From the NCBI GenBank assembly GCA_033442325.1, contig JAWQFM010000002.1, positions 1,853,629 through 1,917,628 of the forward strand: DNA of 64,000 nt, read 5' to 3'. Below are positions 2,231 to 16,708 of this stretch, in pieces. Both the position numbers and the translations under genes were made by a program. This DNA comes from Salpingoeca rosetta. Taxonomy: Eukaryota > Protista > Choanoflagellata. The notes beneath the pieces were generated by a model. That model was not told where the DNA came from. It did not search any database and saw nothing but the letters and a program-made list of their open reading frames with translations. Each line of letters begins with the position of its first letter. Position 1 is the stretch's first letter.

Positions 2231-5200
2231 TGTGGCGCAGGCCAGCGAACGCGGTGAGGAATCGTGTAGGAAAGGAGACCCTCGCACACACACACACACA
2301 GTCACACAGTCACATCAAGTGAAACAGCAAGCGAAGCAAGGACAGTCAAACGACAAGCCAACAACACAACAAACTGATGCGAAGGCACACATACACGCAC
2401 ACAAGCGGGTACACACTACGCGGAACGCAACACGGGGTACAAGTGACCGGATCGTGGCTACCTTTGATGCATTCGTCGTTGTCGTTGCGTATGTAGCCAT
2501 CAGCGCACTCGCACGTGTGCCCGTCTAGTGTGTTGACGCAGACTTCGTTGCTGCCCGAGCACAGGTCAGGGGTTGCTTCGCACTCACCCTGCACGCTGAT
2601 GTGCGAAATGAACCACGGATGGTTCGAGCTGCAGCAGTGGCAAGGTTGAAATGAAGAAGTCGATGGCGCAAAGGTGGTAGGAGGGTACAGGGACAGTTAG
2701 ATGGGCGGCAGATATGGAGGTGTGCGCGGGCAAGTTTGTGCAAGGTAGACACAAGAACGATTCCACAGTCGAAGGGCAGCACACATCAGCACACGCCGGC
2801 GTCAGACATACATTCAAAGACACAAGCAACAGGCATTTATGCTTACAACCGCAAGCACACACACACACACACACACACAAACACCAACACACAGACACAC
2901 ATACCAACACACCAACACAGACGCGCCCATACACACGTGCAAGCACACATCCATGCAAACTTACTCTGTGCTGTCTGCCCACCATCGAAGGCGCATCAGT
3001 GGAGCGCCCTCAAGCGGGATGGTCACCTCTGTTGTGCTGCTGCCGGGAGAGTAGCGGCCCAGCATTTTCCATCGAACGCCACCGTCCGTGCTGGCGGATA
3101 CAGCCACCGTCTCGCTGCGCACATTGCAACGCGCAAACCCAAACTTGATCTCCGTGATACCGCTGAGGTCCATGTCACGCGTCGTAATCTCGTGTCGCCC
3201 GTCTTCATCAAACACAAGACCAACCATCCCCGTCCTGCACACCTTCACCGCGCCAGTCCAGCTGGAGAAGTGGGACGCACTCACGCTGCCGCTCGAAAAG
3301 TCGACGGCGAGCGATTGGGGCAGGCGTGCTGACGGCGTTTCGCACCGAGTGCCCGTGTACCCTTCGTCACAATCACAGCGGCCCGCCAGCGTGCACCGAC
3401 CATGACCGCTGCACATGCCTGGGCACAGGCCGCCAATAAACAGGTTGTCGATGGCAAACGTGTTGACGGCACCGGCATCACGCGCAATGGCAATACGGTA
3501 GTGTGCGCTGGGGTTGTTGCCCAGCTCAAATGTGAAGCGGCGCCAGCCCCGGTACGCCTCGTTGCCGAAGATGGTGCCGGGATGCTGCCACTCGGAGCAG
3601 GCAACCGTGGTGGGGTCACACGTCAGCTGCTGCAGGTCGATGAAGTTGCCCATCAACCCCGCGCTGAATGACGCGGTGATGGGGTCCGTGGATCCGCTCA
3701 CGCCCTCGCAGTTGGTGGCCAGGTCAAACTGCAGGTAGTACGTGGTGTACGGTGTGCCGGCAACGCCGACATCCGCCAGCGCCCACACATCCATGCCCTC
3801 CGTGAACGTTGGTTGGATCCACCTGAACTTGGTCGTCGCCGTGCGGTCTGGCGCAGCGTCGTCGAGTGCAAGCGACACCCGGGTGTTCTGATGCGTCGGG
3901 TACTTGAGTTCCATCATCGATTTCCAATTCTGGCCATTGTCGATGGAGTACTCCAAGAACCTGGACACGAAGATACACACGGATTGTGACGTAACGTGAG
4001 GTGATGTGATGTGATGTATGGATACGTGTGGATGGTCAGAAAAGGATAGACCAAGGGCATGTTGGTGGTTTAAGCAGAATGCAAGCAAGGCATGGAGGAG
4101 CAGCACAGCCCTTCAACTCAAGTCATACAACACCATTGAGTCAAATTGCACAAACGTACACATTCTCGTTGCGGGCAGACGATTCCGGGGAATCGCAACC
4201 GCCAGCGCCAAAGGTGAATGTAAACGCGAGTTTCAGGTTTGTGGGAGAGACGTCGAGTGGCTCCGTTTCCGCCACGCGCACAAACCCGAGGCCGTCAAAC
4301 ACCCATCCGCTTGTGGTCAGTCCGCAATCCTGGAATTGCATGGACAACAGCAACGCAGAAATCGCATTCACCAGGGCAGGTGGGTGTCGAGAGGAAAGCA
4401 GGTGCATGATAAACACGTGAGCCAGCGCAGACTACACCAGCAATTGCATCCACAAGCACACGCGTACGTGCATGCACACACCTTTGCTTGGCGTCGGCCT
4501 TGCACAGATTTCCATGAGGACGATGCTGGAGTGGACAGCGTGTCCATCAACACCACGAGCTCCTCTGCACCAGCAACACGCAAACAATACACTCGTAGTG
4601 AGCCGGTGCGTAGGTACGTTCGCGAGAGACAAGTGCGCACACAAAGGTACAAACAGGCAGAGAGACACACGCACACAAAGGTACATGTACAAGAACACGA
4701 GCATATCACATGTTCACATGGCTAAGCCGACACAACCAAACCTGGTTGAAGGTCGACGTCACGGGTGGTGATGAGAAACTCGCTGACAGCCTGCTCTTTG
4801 AATACGAGCGCGTTGCCCTCTGACGAACAGAACGATTCCGTGACACCGCCTCGCACGGTCACGAAGTTTACAGCGTCGTAGCCATCAGCGTCGCCGTCGC
4901 CGTTGCCGCCAAAGTCCTCAACGATTGCGGTTGGCGTCACGCTGCCCGGAGGTCCAACATACACGTCGTCAATGTTCTGACAACGAAATCGCAGGAGCCA
5001 AAGCAGGTGAGCCATGGTGTGACGCGGGCAGGAAAAGGTGTGGAAATTAAACGGCCGACAAAGCTTTGCGCAACGCAAAATCAATCACAGGCGTCGAGCG
5101 GGTCACATGTCATTAAGGGTGGCAACCAACATCAAATTTTCTTCCTCTACACCGCGGCAGTGATACCGCTATAATCACAAAACAGAAAGATCGCAAGCGC

Positions 5201-14200: not shown

Positions 14201-16708
14201 GACCACGACGTGCACGCAGAGAGCTGGATGTCGCAGTTGCTGGTGCCGGCAAAAGAGAAGCTCTCGCCATCGGTGGAGCGCTCCAGGCGAAGCGTAAACG
14301 ACGTTGTGGGTGGTGTGCAGCCAAAGGACAGGTCAAATTGCATCATGGTGCCCGCCTTGGGAATGATGGGCGCTGTAATCAGGTGCTGCACACTGGACGT
14401 GGGCGAGAAAACGAGCCCGTTTCGCTGGCACAGCGACGTAAACCTGGTGCCGGCCGCAGACACAAACTCGGTGGTGTTGAGCACAGGTCCTGTCAGTGCA
14501 CTGGCGATGCGCGGCAGTGGCACCGACGTCTGCAGCGACACGCCGTCAATCGACTAATGCGTGTGTTGTGTGTGCATATGTGCATGTGTGTGTGTGTGTC
14601 GAAGCGTGAGGGTGGCAGAAAGGATATTGGGGAAGCTGCTGAACGCATTGATGTCAGATGACGGCACTCCTGTATCTCAACGTGACAAGCGGCTATATCA
14701 CGTGCAAGCATGCGCCCTCACCCAAAAATCCGTGGTTGTTCCGCTGGCAGCAAACTGATAAAACGCAAAGCGCGTGTACGGCGTTCGGGCGGCCTCGGGA
14801 ATGGCCACAGACACTGGTGATTGGTTGGTGGTCGGTGCGCGTGTGTTGCGGCGTGTTGTGATGTGTGTTGAGGGCGGATGGCAGAGGAGGACAAGACGTC
14901 TATACGCAAACAGCACACACACACACAACACACACACACACACAGCACAGCACACACACACACACACACACACAGGCGTACACACACACACAGACAGCAC
15001 ACAGACAGCACACACACAGGCACACACCGTAGCCGCCCCTCTCGAAGCTTGAGTAAGAGAGGATGCGCATTGGAATGACGGTCGCGCCGCCGTCCAGGGA
15101 GTAGCCAATCACAACGCTCTCCGCAATGTTGTCTGGCTCTTCGCACCCTTCCCCGCCAATCTGCACAATCGCGTTGATGCGGGCTGCGCTGCGTGCGTCG
15201 AGAACCGGCGTGAGGGCCCTGCGCCGCTCGGACTTGCGATCAAAGACGAGGGCGTTGCCGTACGCAGCCCGCCCGCACGCGCTGGAGGAGGTGATGCGTC
15301 CCCCGTTCACCTCCCAGTCAATGTCGTCCTCAAACTGCTCAAATAGCGTGGTTGGAGGCGCCGTGGCAGGCACGCAGCCAAGCGTTGGGTGGGGCACGAA
15401 GCCAGCATCGCAGGCGCATGTGGGCATGACAGAGGCCGTCAGGTTGCAGAAACCGGCGCTCGCGCACCCGTTTGCGCAGCCACTGCCGACATACACGTTG
15501 TCGATGCCCCACTGTGCCGTGACAGACGATCCCACTCGAAACACCAGCTCTCCCCTTTTGTGTGTGTGTGTGTGTGTGTGTGTGTGTGTGTGTGTGTGTG
15601 TGTGTGTGTGTGTGTGTGTGTGTGTGTGTGTGTGTGTGTGTGTGTGTGAGTTGTGGTGAGCACACGATAAACACCATGGTCACTGTTGGACCACAAAGCA
15701 CAGGTCCACGCATCATTCACACACAACACACACGCAACACAACACACACACACACAACACACGCGCGATCAACGGCATGACCGACTCACTGGATATTGGG
15801 CGGAAGCGGGAGGTTGATGCGAACCCAGTTGCCCGCGCTAAAGTCAGAAGGGTATGTGGGCCCCGGAAACAGGATGCCAGTGGAGCAGCTGGAGCTGGTG
15901 GACGGCGAGCATGACGTGATCTGGTTTTGTTAAGCATGGATGCATCGGCCAAACACACGAAGCAACAATGTGCGAGAGCACACAAGCGGCAACATGAGAC
16001 AAGCTGGTAGGTAGGGATCGTCAAAGGGTGACAGCGAAGTGCAGGATGAACGTGCACCAATGCAAATGACTTCACAGGGAGACAAAGAGATCGAGAGCGA
16101 GATGCAGAGGGTGCGGCCACACTGCACGATTACACAGACACAAACAGACACACAGACACACAGACACACAGACACGATCACAGACACGATCACTCACACG
16201 ATCACTCACACGATCACACACGATCACACACGATCACACACGATCACACATACACACACACACACACACACACACACACACACACACAGACACACACACA
16301 CACACACACACACACACACACACACACACACACACACACACACACGGACACCTCGTTGTAGGAGGATCCCTGGCGGAAGAAAATGCGAAGCGACAACAAG
16401 GAGCTGGACTCAACACCGCAGGCATCGCCCGCAAAGAACTCAAACTGAAGCAGGCTGCTGCTGGCAGGCGTGGTGATGCTGTTTGTGTAGATGATCTCAT
16501 CGCTGTTGCCGATGAAGGCGTTGCGGCCGCAGGTGGTGCGCGCCGTGCCCCCAGTCCACGCAATCGTGTCTTCCCCAGCCTCGAAGCTGGCGGCAATCAG
16601 TGGCGCCTGTGCCAACACCGCCCTCGGCGCTCTTGCTGCCACCAACACAAACATCATCAACGCTGCCACAGCACGTGTGACAGCCACAGCCCTCCTGGGT
16701 GTCGTCAT
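99..16708 (-). CDS. Reelin-like secreted protein (multi-exon; 3' end lies beyond the left edge of the window)
   Basis: ATG at 16708 followed by a signal-peptide-like [33 protein letters not shown]. Roughly 20 GT-AG exons encode repeated units with Asp-box motifs ([43 protein letters not shown]), W-x-LDD/IDN-x-YVG ends and EGF modules (C-xx-C-xG-xG-xC...CxCDxGF) near 15480, 14040, 11470, 9070, 7280, 6200 and 3420. These are followed by a further EGF (2470-2640) and Cys-rich repeats (99-2230). The last visible exon ends at a GT donor near 99. Confidence 0.85.
9748..10137. other. Compositionally atypical ~390-bp island inside a reelin-like intron (possible foreign insertion)
   Basis: High-complexity, TA-containing sequence wedged between two (CA)n tracts. 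It is not needed for the reelin reading frame. Confidence 0.55.

Follow-up and report, generated by a model that had tools for sequence, protein, structure and literature searches.

A seven-repeat relative of reelin, probably a type I surface receptor, in the choanoflagellate Salpingoeca rosetta

Introduction

Recent papers still treat reelin as a nervous-system protein of vertebrates or, at the widest, of animals (PMC12867693, PMC11401434, PMC3308698). The locus considered here raises the question of whether the repeat that defines reelin is older than animals and, if so, in what kind of molecule it resided. The window, i.e. the whole 64,000-nucleotide stretch of S. rosetta DNA that was analyzed, had been annotated initially as holding a secreted, reelin-like protein. 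No description or analysis of an S. rosetta reelin-repeat protein was found in full-text searches of the literature; automatic domain annotation probably already flags these choanoflagellate proteins, given that both the genome of S. rosetta and transcriptomes of choanoflagellates were released years ago.

Domain architecture of the encoded protein

The elements first noticed at this locus, a signal peptide followed by about seven units of subrepeat A, EGF module, and subrepeat B with Asp-boxes and W-x-[LI]D[DN]-x-Y[VI]G ends, were all found, on the minus strand. The gene runs from position 16708 to the left edge of the window in at least 24 exons, with the following layout (aa, residues of the gene model).

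99-16708, minus strand: in-window part of the reelin-repeat gene; at least 24 exons, 3356 open codons, C-terminus beyond the left edge
16607-16708, minus strand: start codon (first ATG of the ORF) and predicted signal peptide (aa 1-34)
14722-16606, minus strand: reelin repeat 1 (aa 35-371), subrepeat A, EGF at aa 191, subrepeat B; HMM match 33-371, score 435; PF21471 on exon 3
13256-14553, minus strand: reelin repeat 2 (aa 372-724); HMM match 372-724; PF21471 on both exons
10921-12936, minus strand: reelin repeat 3, nested (aa 725-1232); N-terminal part of A, B-like insert (aa 779-935), rest of A, EGF, B
8253-10733, minus strand: reelin repeat 4 (aa 1233-1594); HMM match 1233-1594; Pfam; ~49% identity to the TARA ortholog P0001
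6740-8012, minus strand: reelin repeat 5 (aa 1595-1954); HMM; PDB alignment to mouse R5-6; AlphaFold model against 2E26
5232-6739, minus strand: reelin repeat 6 (aa 1955-2314); evidence as for repeat 5; intron 5786-5359 RNA-verified
2965-4976, minus strand: reelin repeat 7, nested (aa 2315-2808); B-like insert aa 2407-2536; final B shortened
2629-2964, minus strand: intron, joint 2628|2965, GT..AG, seen in 4 of 4 RNA runs
99-2628, minus strand: eighth EGF-like module (aa ~2824-2864) and Cys-rich stalk (aa 2865-3356 onward); RNA-spliced to repeat 7

In the signal peptide, the n-region is basic, residues 7-25 form a hydrophobic core, and the end is of the V-L-A cleavage type. Seven EGF modules lie within the repeats (at model aa 191, 543, 1051, 1411, 1775, 2134, and 2656), 13 ends of the W-x-[ILV]-D-[DN]-x-Y-[IV]-G type close the A and B subrepeats, and about ten Asp-boxes are present. 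An HMM built on the gene's own canonical units sets the unit count at exactly seven and places an extra B-like domain within subrepeat A of units 3 and 7. The same model divides repeat 3 into a B-type match (779-935) and a second match that spans 950-1232 and enters the model at position 70, and repeat 7 into a B-type match (2407-2536) and a match at 2550-2792 from model position 69; all four internal introns of repeat 7 are RNA-verified. Beyond the eighth EGF, the stalk extends for ~500 aa in the window at 14% Cys, its frame open to position 99, in repeats of ~45-60 aa that each close with the motif D-G-x-x-T-x-N-D-x-C-x-x-G-x-C-x-G. No Pfam family matched this stalk, and a tenascin/teneurin-type EGF profile in Pfam also scores on the EGF modules of the gene.

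Gene structure, expression, and taxonomic assignment

The gene is spliced and transcribed. The exons, all on the minus strand, are as follows.

Exons 1-8: 16708-16346, 15920-15790, 15554-15028, 14813-14722, 14553-13918, 13678-13256, 12936-12595, 12341-12235
Exons 9-15: 11995-10921, 10733-10620, 10363-10205, 9328-8622, 8358-8253, 8012-7915, 7721-5787
Exons 16-24: 5358-5232, 4976-4742, 4564-4481, 4328-4158, 3958-2965, 2628-2462, 2229-2118, 1698-1516, 1280-99

RNA-seq confirms the splicing of the last ten exons, which, with their GT..AG introns, were read directly off spliced RNA contigs of up to 10.8 kb (four runs, two studies) that carry no differing letters relative to the locus. For exons 1-15, the junctions are predictions based on frame, splice signals, and orthologs; they are backed by a stop-free frame of 3356 codons and by ortholog alignment. 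The donor of exon 1 falls within a (GT)n run, which leaves its position uncertain by 6 or 12 nt. The length of the RNA contig also supports the predicted exons, which upstream of position 6000 sum to 6601 nt, as compared with 6904 nt in the contig. The gene had initially been taken to end at 2965, a boundary that the transcript does not respect: 2965 is an exon end, and the TGA at 2962-2964 that suggested termination is intronic. RNA contigs splice from 2965 to 2628, continue through 2462-2628, 2118-2229, 1516-1698, and 99-1280 and then past the window, ending 421 nt beyond position 99, so that spliced RNA carries on into the eighth EGF and the Cys-rich stalk.

The genome can be assigned to Salpingoeca rosetta, in agreement with the choanoflagellate style first attributed to it, because a neighboring ORF is 100% identical to S. 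rosetta PTSG_01384. An assembly artefact or animal contamination, in which case the locus would not be choanoflagellate at all, has a vanishingly small probability. No evidence in support of either was found, and both are refuted by three observations: the stretch is present in 20 of the 24 listed public runs (nine studies, one organism label), with at least half of its sampled words in 18 of those 20; the RNA contigs match it without a differing letter; and the PTSG_01384 ORF adjoins it on a 2.37-Mb contig.

Homology of the repeats to those of animal reelin

Sequence, fold, and the arrangement of successive repeats in pairs all show that the units are genuinely homologous to the repeats of animal reelin. 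The Pfam family Reelin_subrepeat-B (PF21471) matches nearly every large exon (best E 1.6e-50), with scores of 42.7-170.6 bits on seven ORFs that contain exons, where the curated cut-off is 27 bits. A phmmer search of the PDB with the 701-aa exon returned reelin chains only, the best being mouse reelin R5-6 (3A7Q/2E26, E 2.7e-66) in an alignment that is collinear across two whole repeats. The AlphaFold2 model of exon 15 (pLDDT 90.1, pTM 0.87) superposes on 2E26 with a TM score of 0.75 and an rmsd of 4.6 over 626 columns in a Foldseek search of the PDB, in which the top eight matches are all reelin and the next best has an E-value of 1e-9. Nested unit 3 is collinear with the N-terminal structure of mouse reelin, 6A48, and shares the topology of animal R1. 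Among full-length matches, animal reelins rank next after choanoflagellate proteins. The suggested kinship with reelin repeats, rather than with bacterial Asp-box look-alikes, thus stands in profile search and structural superposition alike. Because the A-EGF-B unit is homologous to reelin repeats and the genome is that of a choanoflagellate, the unit predates animals.

Some of the same searches bear on whether the locus instead represents a widespread bacterial Asp-box jelly-roll module, acquired horizontally or by convergence, and not reelin specifically. Tandem arrays of the B-type subrepeat alone do occur in bacteria, as in P0018 (MBX3100897.1), a T9SS-sorted Bacteroidota protein with 12 copies of PF21471, and in the matches as a whole B-type domains stand alone in 48 of 166 classified proteins; P0002 has ~35 B-only copies, and P0073 is named as a Zn-dependent metalloprotease. 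Subrepeat A with EGF is found, however, in 95 of the 166, and among the 30 matches for which the source name was looked up it is confined to animals and choanoflagellates, whereas the two named bacterial proteins are B-only. The A-EGF-B unit, its order, and its nested variant are collinear with mouse reelin (E 1e-66), which contradicts a bacterial Asp-box origin for the whole unit, and spliceosomal introns interrupt the gene, whose chromosome context is that of S. rosetta. The bacterial proteins are relevant to the more distant ancestry of the B domain rather than to the identity of this gene, and the bacterial explanation is accordingly highly improbable.

Phylogeny of the repeat units

A tree of individual units separates choanoflagellate from animal units with moderate support (UFBoot 81/SH-aLRT 87). 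Most animal repeat positions (R1, R2, R3, R5, and R8) form well-supported cross-phylum groups, whereas every unit of S. rosetta belongs to the choanoflagellate group, with no one-to-one pairing with animal R1-R8; S. rosetta repeat 1 pairs with unit 1 of S. infusionum (support 96/97). A clade uniting the position-3 choanoflagellate nested units, unit 7 being outside the test, with animal R1 is disfavored (AU p 0.028). The repeat unit, nested form included, predates the choanoflagellate/animal split, and the simplest reading is that multi-unit arrays diversified separately in each lineage; this is not proven, because concerted evolution could erase one-to-one orthology. The initial view that a near-full reelin array preceded animals is therefore upheld for the unit and its nested variant but not for the seven- to eight-unit array, the units of which cluster by lineage.

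Choanoflagellate orthologs and membrane anchoring

The whole layout is kept in order in other choanoflagellates. Salpingoeca infusionum EP00049_P002869 (P0003) aligns with the S. rosetta model in one collinear HSP (model 44-3356 against 26-3247 of 3549), as does EukProt m.289284 (P0168). Both are orthologs of the S. rosetta gene, with 32-34% identity overall and 42% in the stalks, and share its succession of R1, R2, nested R3, R4-R6, nested R7, EGF, and Cys-rich stalk. Each ends in a stalk rich in Thr, then a transmembrane helix and, on the cytoplasmic side, a tail with an FxNPxY motif (FENPTY or FANPTY). TARA Oceans metagenomes and Craspedida sp. UC1 (P0024) contain further orthologs. EukProt m.244800 (P0007), in which a transmembrane helix is combined with an SH2 domain on the cytoplasmic side, is a paralog-like variant that, unlike the S. 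rosetta gene, carries SRCR domains and extra inserts. P0003, P0168, P0007, and P0024 are unannotated, uncharacterized choanoflagellate transcriptome predictions.

Because two collinear full-length orthologs carry a transmembrane helix and tail, the S. rosetta protein is probably a type I surface receptor and not a secreted ligand; the helix and tail are assigned from orthologs of ~33% identity, the S. rosetta C-terminus lying to the left of the window. The designation of the protein as secreted thus finds no support, given that the transcript runs into the EGF and Cys-rich stalk and that P0003 and P0168 are membrane-spanning with FxNPxY tails.

The contrary proposal, that of a secreted, diffusible reelin ortholog acting as a matrix or colony-adhesion ligand, with a near-complete array inherited by animals, draws on the signal peptide, the seven A-EGF-B units (near the animal count of eight), a nested unit resembling animal R1, and the rank of animal reelins directly behind choanoflagellate proteins among full-length matches; a large ectodomain could also be shed and become soluble. 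Against it stand the passage of the transcript beyond 2965, the type I topology of the collinear orthologs, the grouping of units by lineage rather than position, and the AU result on nested units, as well as the lack of three reelin features. The Reeler domain (PF02014), present in the animal reelins that these searches returned, is absent from exon 1 and every other exon by Pfam; Pfam finds nothing on exon 1, and the mature N-terminus opens directly with subrepeat A. No basic C-terminal region follows unit 7, where at least 490 aa of EGF and Cys-rich stalk are found instead; shark reelin ends in a basic region with no transmembrane helix. K2360 and K2467 of mouse reelin R6 bind the LA1 module of ApoER2/VLDLR, and no S. 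rosetta unit has Lys at the corresponding columns. This pair is present in shark R6 but absent from R6 of horseshoe crab, acorn worm, and nemertean, and may therefore define vertebrate reelin only. The S. rosetta protein is a differently built relative, not a reelin ortholog, and a secreted ortholog is quite unlikely.

Proposed function and origin

With good confidence, the locus can be described as an expressed gene of S. rosetta that encodes a giant glycoprotein of the cell surface with seven reelin repeats, probably a membrane-anchored type I receptor or adhesion molecule. Its ectodomain would consist of the signal peptide, seven reelin repeats, eighth EGF, and long Cys-rich stalk, and the ~300 aa missing to the left of the window would supply a mucin-like segment rich in Thr, a single transmembrane helix, and a short FxNPxY tail. 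The reelin repeats would form a rigid rod, held off the membrane to bind an extracellular partner. The likeness of the fold to jelly-rolls that bind carbohydrate suggests that this partner may be a glycan, matrix material, or the surface of bacteria. The tail would couple partner binding to endocytosis or to phosphotyrosine/PTB adaptors. On the evolutionary reading given above, animal reelin is the secreted branch, the one with the Reeler domain. It is possible, though only tentatively proposed, that the last common ancestor of choanoflagellates and animals had a multi-unit reelin-repeat surface receptor, the nested unit included, from which reelin arose by loss of the stalk, transmembrane helix, and tail and by gain of Reeler. 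If so, the origin of reelin involved a transition from receptor to secreted ligand. The FxNPxY-type motif is found in animals on the reelin receptors ApoER2 and VLDLR, where it recruits Dab1; under the same scenario, a single molecule would once have combined the roles of ligand and receptor tail, which animals divide between different proteins.

The defining repeat of reelin, in its nested form too, is present in an expressed, conserved gene of receptor-like architecture in the closest living relatives of animals, which recasts the origin of reelin as the remodeling of domain architecture in a surface protein of greater age. S. rosetta is amenable to culture and genome editing and alternates between a single-celled state and rosette colonies, so that the role of the reelin-repeat rod outside any nervous system is directly testable.

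Comparison with known systems

Animal reelin (mouse structures 2DDU, 2E26, 3A7Q, 5B4X, 6A48, and 7LYU) has the same unit of A jelly-roll, EGF, and B jelly-roll and shares with the S. rosetta protein the Asp-boxes, conserved Cys pattern, two-repeat packing, and signal peptide. The two are similar in repeat count (eight in animal reelin, seven in S. rosetta), and both have a nested unit with a B-like domain inserted in subrepeat A; they differ in its position, which is R1/the N-terminal region in animal reelin but units 3 and 7 in S. rosetta. The S. rosetta protein lacks the Reeler domain and basic C-terminal region of animal reelin, as well as the R6 lysines of the vertebrate protein; the latter adds the eighth EGF and Cys-rich stalk, to which its orthologs add the mucin-like stalk, transmembrane helix, and FxNPxY tail. 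The bacterial arrays exemplified by MBX3100897.1 share tandem B-type jelly-roll/Asp-box domains (PF21471) with the S. rosetta gene but have neither subrepeat A nor EGF, and their secretion signal differs (Por_Secre_tail). Teneurin is a neuronal surface protein with premetazoan relatives in choanoflagellates. Its remaining architecture is unrelated to that of the S. rosetta protein, and the analogy is one of evolutionary pattern, not of whole-protein homology: teneurin shows that an animal surface protein regarded as "neuronal" can have building blocks that are also found in choanoflagellates.

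Locus and gene structure

The Salpingoeca rosetta reelin-repeat gene lies in a region of eukaryotic character (G+C 55-63%), where minus-strand coding blocks alternate with introns rich in (CA)n/(GT)n microsatellites. Contigs of four RNA-like runs, in which 36-73% of words sampled from a stretch that is ~80% exon were present, were aligned to window positions 1-6000. Every run yielded a single spliced molecule, the longest of 10,794 nt, that agrees with the window letter for letter and has minus-strand introns bounded by GT..AG.

Exons placed by RNA contigs
5787-(7721), minus, exon
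5232-5358, minus, exon
4742-4976, minus, exon
4481-4564, minus, exon
4158-4328, minus, exon
2965-3958, minus, exon
2462-2628, minus, exon
2118-2229, minus, exon
1516-1698, minus, exon
99-1280, minus, exon

This splicing pattern identifies position 2965, where the initial annotation had ended the gene, as an exon end, and the adjoining TGA is thus intronic. The reading frame continues without a stop through to position 99, and the contigs extend 421 nt past this point, outside the window, all four stopping about there. Upstream junctions were predicted from frame, splice signals and ortholog similarity. The full model comprises 24 exons and 3356 codons and is stop-free, with its 5' junctions predicted. 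Between the ATG at 16708 and position 6001 the model accounts for 6601 nt, in agreement with the longest RNA contig, which has 6904 nt upstream of 6000; the remaining ~300 nt fit a 5' UTR. The exon 1 donor falls inside a (GT)n run, leaving its placement uncertain by 6 or 12 nt. Long microsatellites of this type occur in many introns of the gene (window 2000-17800), some perfect over 60-90 bp, and several donors coincide with the beginning of a GT run, so that the precise splice point is ambiguous, as in exon 1.

Examples of intronic (GT)n/(CA)n microsatellites
5394-5503, microsatellite
5675-5743, microsatellite
8068-8116, microsatellite
10139-10198, microsatellite
15559-15648, microsatellite
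16132-16345, microsatellite

The organismal source is established by a neighboring 852-aa ORF (45205-47760, plus strand) with 100% identity to hypothetical protein PTSG_01384 of S. rosetta, on a 2.37-Mb contig, and by the labels of public runs: the reelin-like stretch is present in 20 of 24 listed runs from 9 studies, all assigned to one organism. The window thus comes from a choanoflagellate, as the initial annotation had supposed, and not from an animal. Among 20 further ORFs of the window scanned with Pfam, no housekeeping gene usable for taxon placement was found. The identity to PTSG_01384, an 887-aa protein that UniRef names 'Centrosomal protein of 78 kDa', covers only 56% of the ORF, part of which the public model evidently splices out.

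Domain architecture and homology to reelin

Pfam family PF21471 (Reelin_subrepeat-B) is detected on nearly all large coding blocks, with E-values down to 1.6e-50 (cut-off 27 bits). Teneurin/tenascin-type EGF modules lie between these blocks, and BNR/Asp-box matches are weak. A unit HMM was built from the five canonical units of the gene and run on the gene model, resolving seven A-EGF-B units.

Domain layout of the gene model (minus-strand gene; units by unit HMM)
aa 1-34, signal peptide
aa 35-371, R1
aa 372-724, R2
aa 725-1232, R3, nested, with inserted B-type domain at aa 779-935
aa 1233-1594, R4
aa 1595-1954, R5
aa 1955-2314, R6
aa 2315-2808, R7, nested, with inserted B-type domain at aa 2407-2536

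The two nested units consist of ~65 positions of subrepeat A, a whole extra B-type domain, and then subrepeat A again from model position 70. A motif tally is consistent with this layout, giving seven EGF modules, 13 ends of the W-x-I-D-N-x-Y-I-G type and ~10 Asp-boxes. No Reeler domain is found by Pfam, and the mature protein begins directly with subrepeat A. R7 is followed by one more EGF-like module, the eighth, and then by 490 aa or more of Cys-rich repeats (Cys content 14%) without a match to any Pfam family. This stalk, which retains 42% identity in two other choanoflagellates (Salpingoeca infusionum P0003 and EukProt P0168), may represent an undescribed choanoflagellate stalk module. 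Its repeats (99-2628, minus strand) span ~45-60 aa, each closing with D-G-x-x-T-x-N-D-x-C-x-x-G-x-C-x-G. The possibility that it is shared with the neighboring multi-lectin receptor gene was rejected, as tblastn gave no match at 1e-4 elsewhere in the window.

A phmmer search of a 701-aa block (5783-7888, minus strand) against all PDB sequences matched five distinct sequences, all of them reelin. The best, the mouse R5-R6 fragment (3A7Q/2E26; E 2.7e-66), aligns collinearly across two successive A-EGF-B units. The repeats recognized in the initial annotation are therefore real and well past chance. Exon 15, which covers R5 and most of R6, was modelled with AlphaFold2 from a 43-row alignment, giving a mean pLDDT of 90.1 and a pTM of 0.87. 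With this model as query, the top eight PDB entries returned by Foldseek are reelin; the best E-value is that of 5B4X (1.3e-37), and 2E26 is matched over 626 columns with TM 0.75 and rmsd 4.6. After these come unrelated jelly-roll/CBM-type proteins at E ~1e-9 and TM <0.2. Reelin, rather than bacterial Asp-box proteins, heads both the sequence and the structure lists, and the outcome that the initial annotation named as counting against it did not arise.

Relatives and their distribution

An exhaustive profile search over 1.84 billion representatives recovered 306 proteins, 45 with E <1e-30, which were sorted by those source names looked up. The closest relative is a ~50%-identical ortholog on TARA Oceans metagenome contigs (P0001/P0151). 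On scaffolds L001-L003, this ortholog of an uncultured marine relative has a 4.8-kb intron-free stretch, and the called protein finishes in read-through of a (GT)n-type intron. Choanoflagellate transcript models rank next (P0003, 3549 aa; EukProt P0007 and P0168; P0024 of Craspedida sp. UC1), followed by animal reelins from horseshoe crab, acorn worm, elephant shark, nemertean, amphioxus, crinoid, leech, krill and hagfish; a Sycon protein is also among the animal matches. Single collinear HSPs at 32-34% identity, which take in the Cys-rich stalk, link the S. rosetta model to P0003 (44-3356 vs 26-3247 of 3549) and to P0168 (19-3355 vs 1-3297 of 3538), and the unit HMM gives P0003 the same layout of R1, R2, nested R3, R4-R6 and nested R7. 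Searches seeded with P0003 or window exons recovered only P0160, P0168 and animal reelins, and no annotated S. rosetta protein.

A separate group of matches contains tandem B-type domains alone, among them P0018 (MBX3100897.1, from a Bacteroidota MAG), which has 12 copies and a T9SS sorting tail, and P0073, which bears the name Zn-dependent metalloprotease. Bacterial or metagenomic giants of this kind (P0018, P0073, P0002/P0154 and P0012) carry 12 to ~35 copies of the B-type subrepeat only. The B domain by itself therefore extends beyond eukaryotes and may have a deeper origin outside them. The composite A-EGF-B unit occurs only in animals and choanoflagellates among the matches with names looked up. 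A 2248-aa metagenomic protein, P0160 (L004/L005, JGI metagenome 3300046527), carries the JGI name 'reelin' and adjoins calls for reelin subrepeat B and fn2. Its five units side with animal units at no specific R1-R8 position, and it may come from an early-branching animal or from a different holozoan.

Relation to the animal repeat array

By the same unit HMM, animal reelin starts with a Reeler domain followed by a B-like domain, after which come a nested R1 and canonical R2-R8. Animal R1 contains a B-like insert after which subrepeat A resumes at model position 70, as in S. rosetta R3 and R7, indicating a nested topology common to animals and choanoflagellates. The nested unit of P0003 aligns in one stretch to residues 220-661 of the mouse reelin N-terminal region (6A48; E 1.6e-19). 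For S. rosetta, the match of exon 9 runs from within the insert and covers 6A48 residues 336-661 (E 2.3e-37), and exon 7 aligns weakly to the preceding segment.

A maximum likelihood tree of 64 units (columns 70-357, IQ-TREE, LG+C20) separates all 27 choanoflagellate-type units from all 32 animal units and the five P0160 units (UFBoot 81, SH-aLRT 87; recovered in 82% of bootstrap trees). Most S. rosetta units, with the exception of 2 and 7, pair with the same-position TARA or S. infusionum unit at 96-100% support, and animal R1, R2, R3, R5 and R8 form well-supported groups across phyla. A constraint that makes the choanoflagellate position-3 nested units a clade with animal R1 lowers the log-likelihood by 42 units and is disfavoured (AU p 0.028). 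These results are most simply read as an ancestral unit, nested form included, and arrays that diversified separately in each lineage, although concerted evolution could blur this picture. A near-full reelin array predating animals, as initially proposed, would then stand for the unit and nested form but not for the array, because units group by lineage.

Mouse R6 residues K2360 and K2467, the two lysines that bind ApoER2/VLDLR, have equivalents in shark R6 but in none of the S. rosetta units or the three invertebrate R6 units examined. Nothing in the S. rosetta protein therefore points to LDL-receptor-type binding.

Membrane anchoring, possible function and comparison with animal reelin

P0003 and P0168 run ~300 residues further than the window's end point, through the remaining Cys-rich region, a Thr-rich mucin-like stretch and one strong transmembrane helix to a tail of 60-100 aa containing FENPTY (P0003, ~3505-3515) or FANPTY (P0168, ~3460-3470). 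These motifs are of the FxNPxY type that recruits Dab1 to animal reelin receptors. P0007 (EukProt m.244800) combines a transmembrane helix with an NPxF motif and with an SH2 domain in its cytoplasmic tail. It also carries SRCR domains in its ectodomain (SRCR at residues 30-127, E 1.6e-19; SH2 at ~4525-4585, E 5.6e-06), uniting reelin repeats and phosphotyrosine signalling on one chain. By alignment to P0003, the RNA contigs would stop, ~421 nt past position 99, at the start of the low-complexity Thr-rich stretch, which could break RNA assembly. Because its collinear orthologs carry a transmembrane helix and tail, the S. rosetta protein is probably a type I membrane protein rather than the secreted one first described.

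A surface receptor or adhesion molecule is a fairly plausible assignment. The ectodomain would form a rigid multi-repeat rod atop a Cys-rich, mucin-like stalk. This rod would bind a partner outside the cell, and the tail would couple to endocytosis or to PTB/SH2 adaptors. Glycan, matrix or prey bacteria are speculative partners, suggested by the CBM-like fold and the bacterial B-domain proteins.

Full-text literature searches (including Salpingoeca, Monosiga and the guessed identifiers PTSG_01376-01381) found no description of reelin repeats in choanoflagellates. In recent papers reelin is still called vertebrate-only until recently, confined to chordates, molluscs and arthropods, or 'later-evolving' (PMC12867693, PMC11401434, PMC3308698). 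The sequences are public, and the domain is presumably already marked by automatic annotation. Shark reelin, unlike P0003 and P0168, lacks a transmembrane helix and ends in a basic region. The S. rosetta reelin-repeat protein appears to be an undescribed variant, built from an already known kind of repeat.
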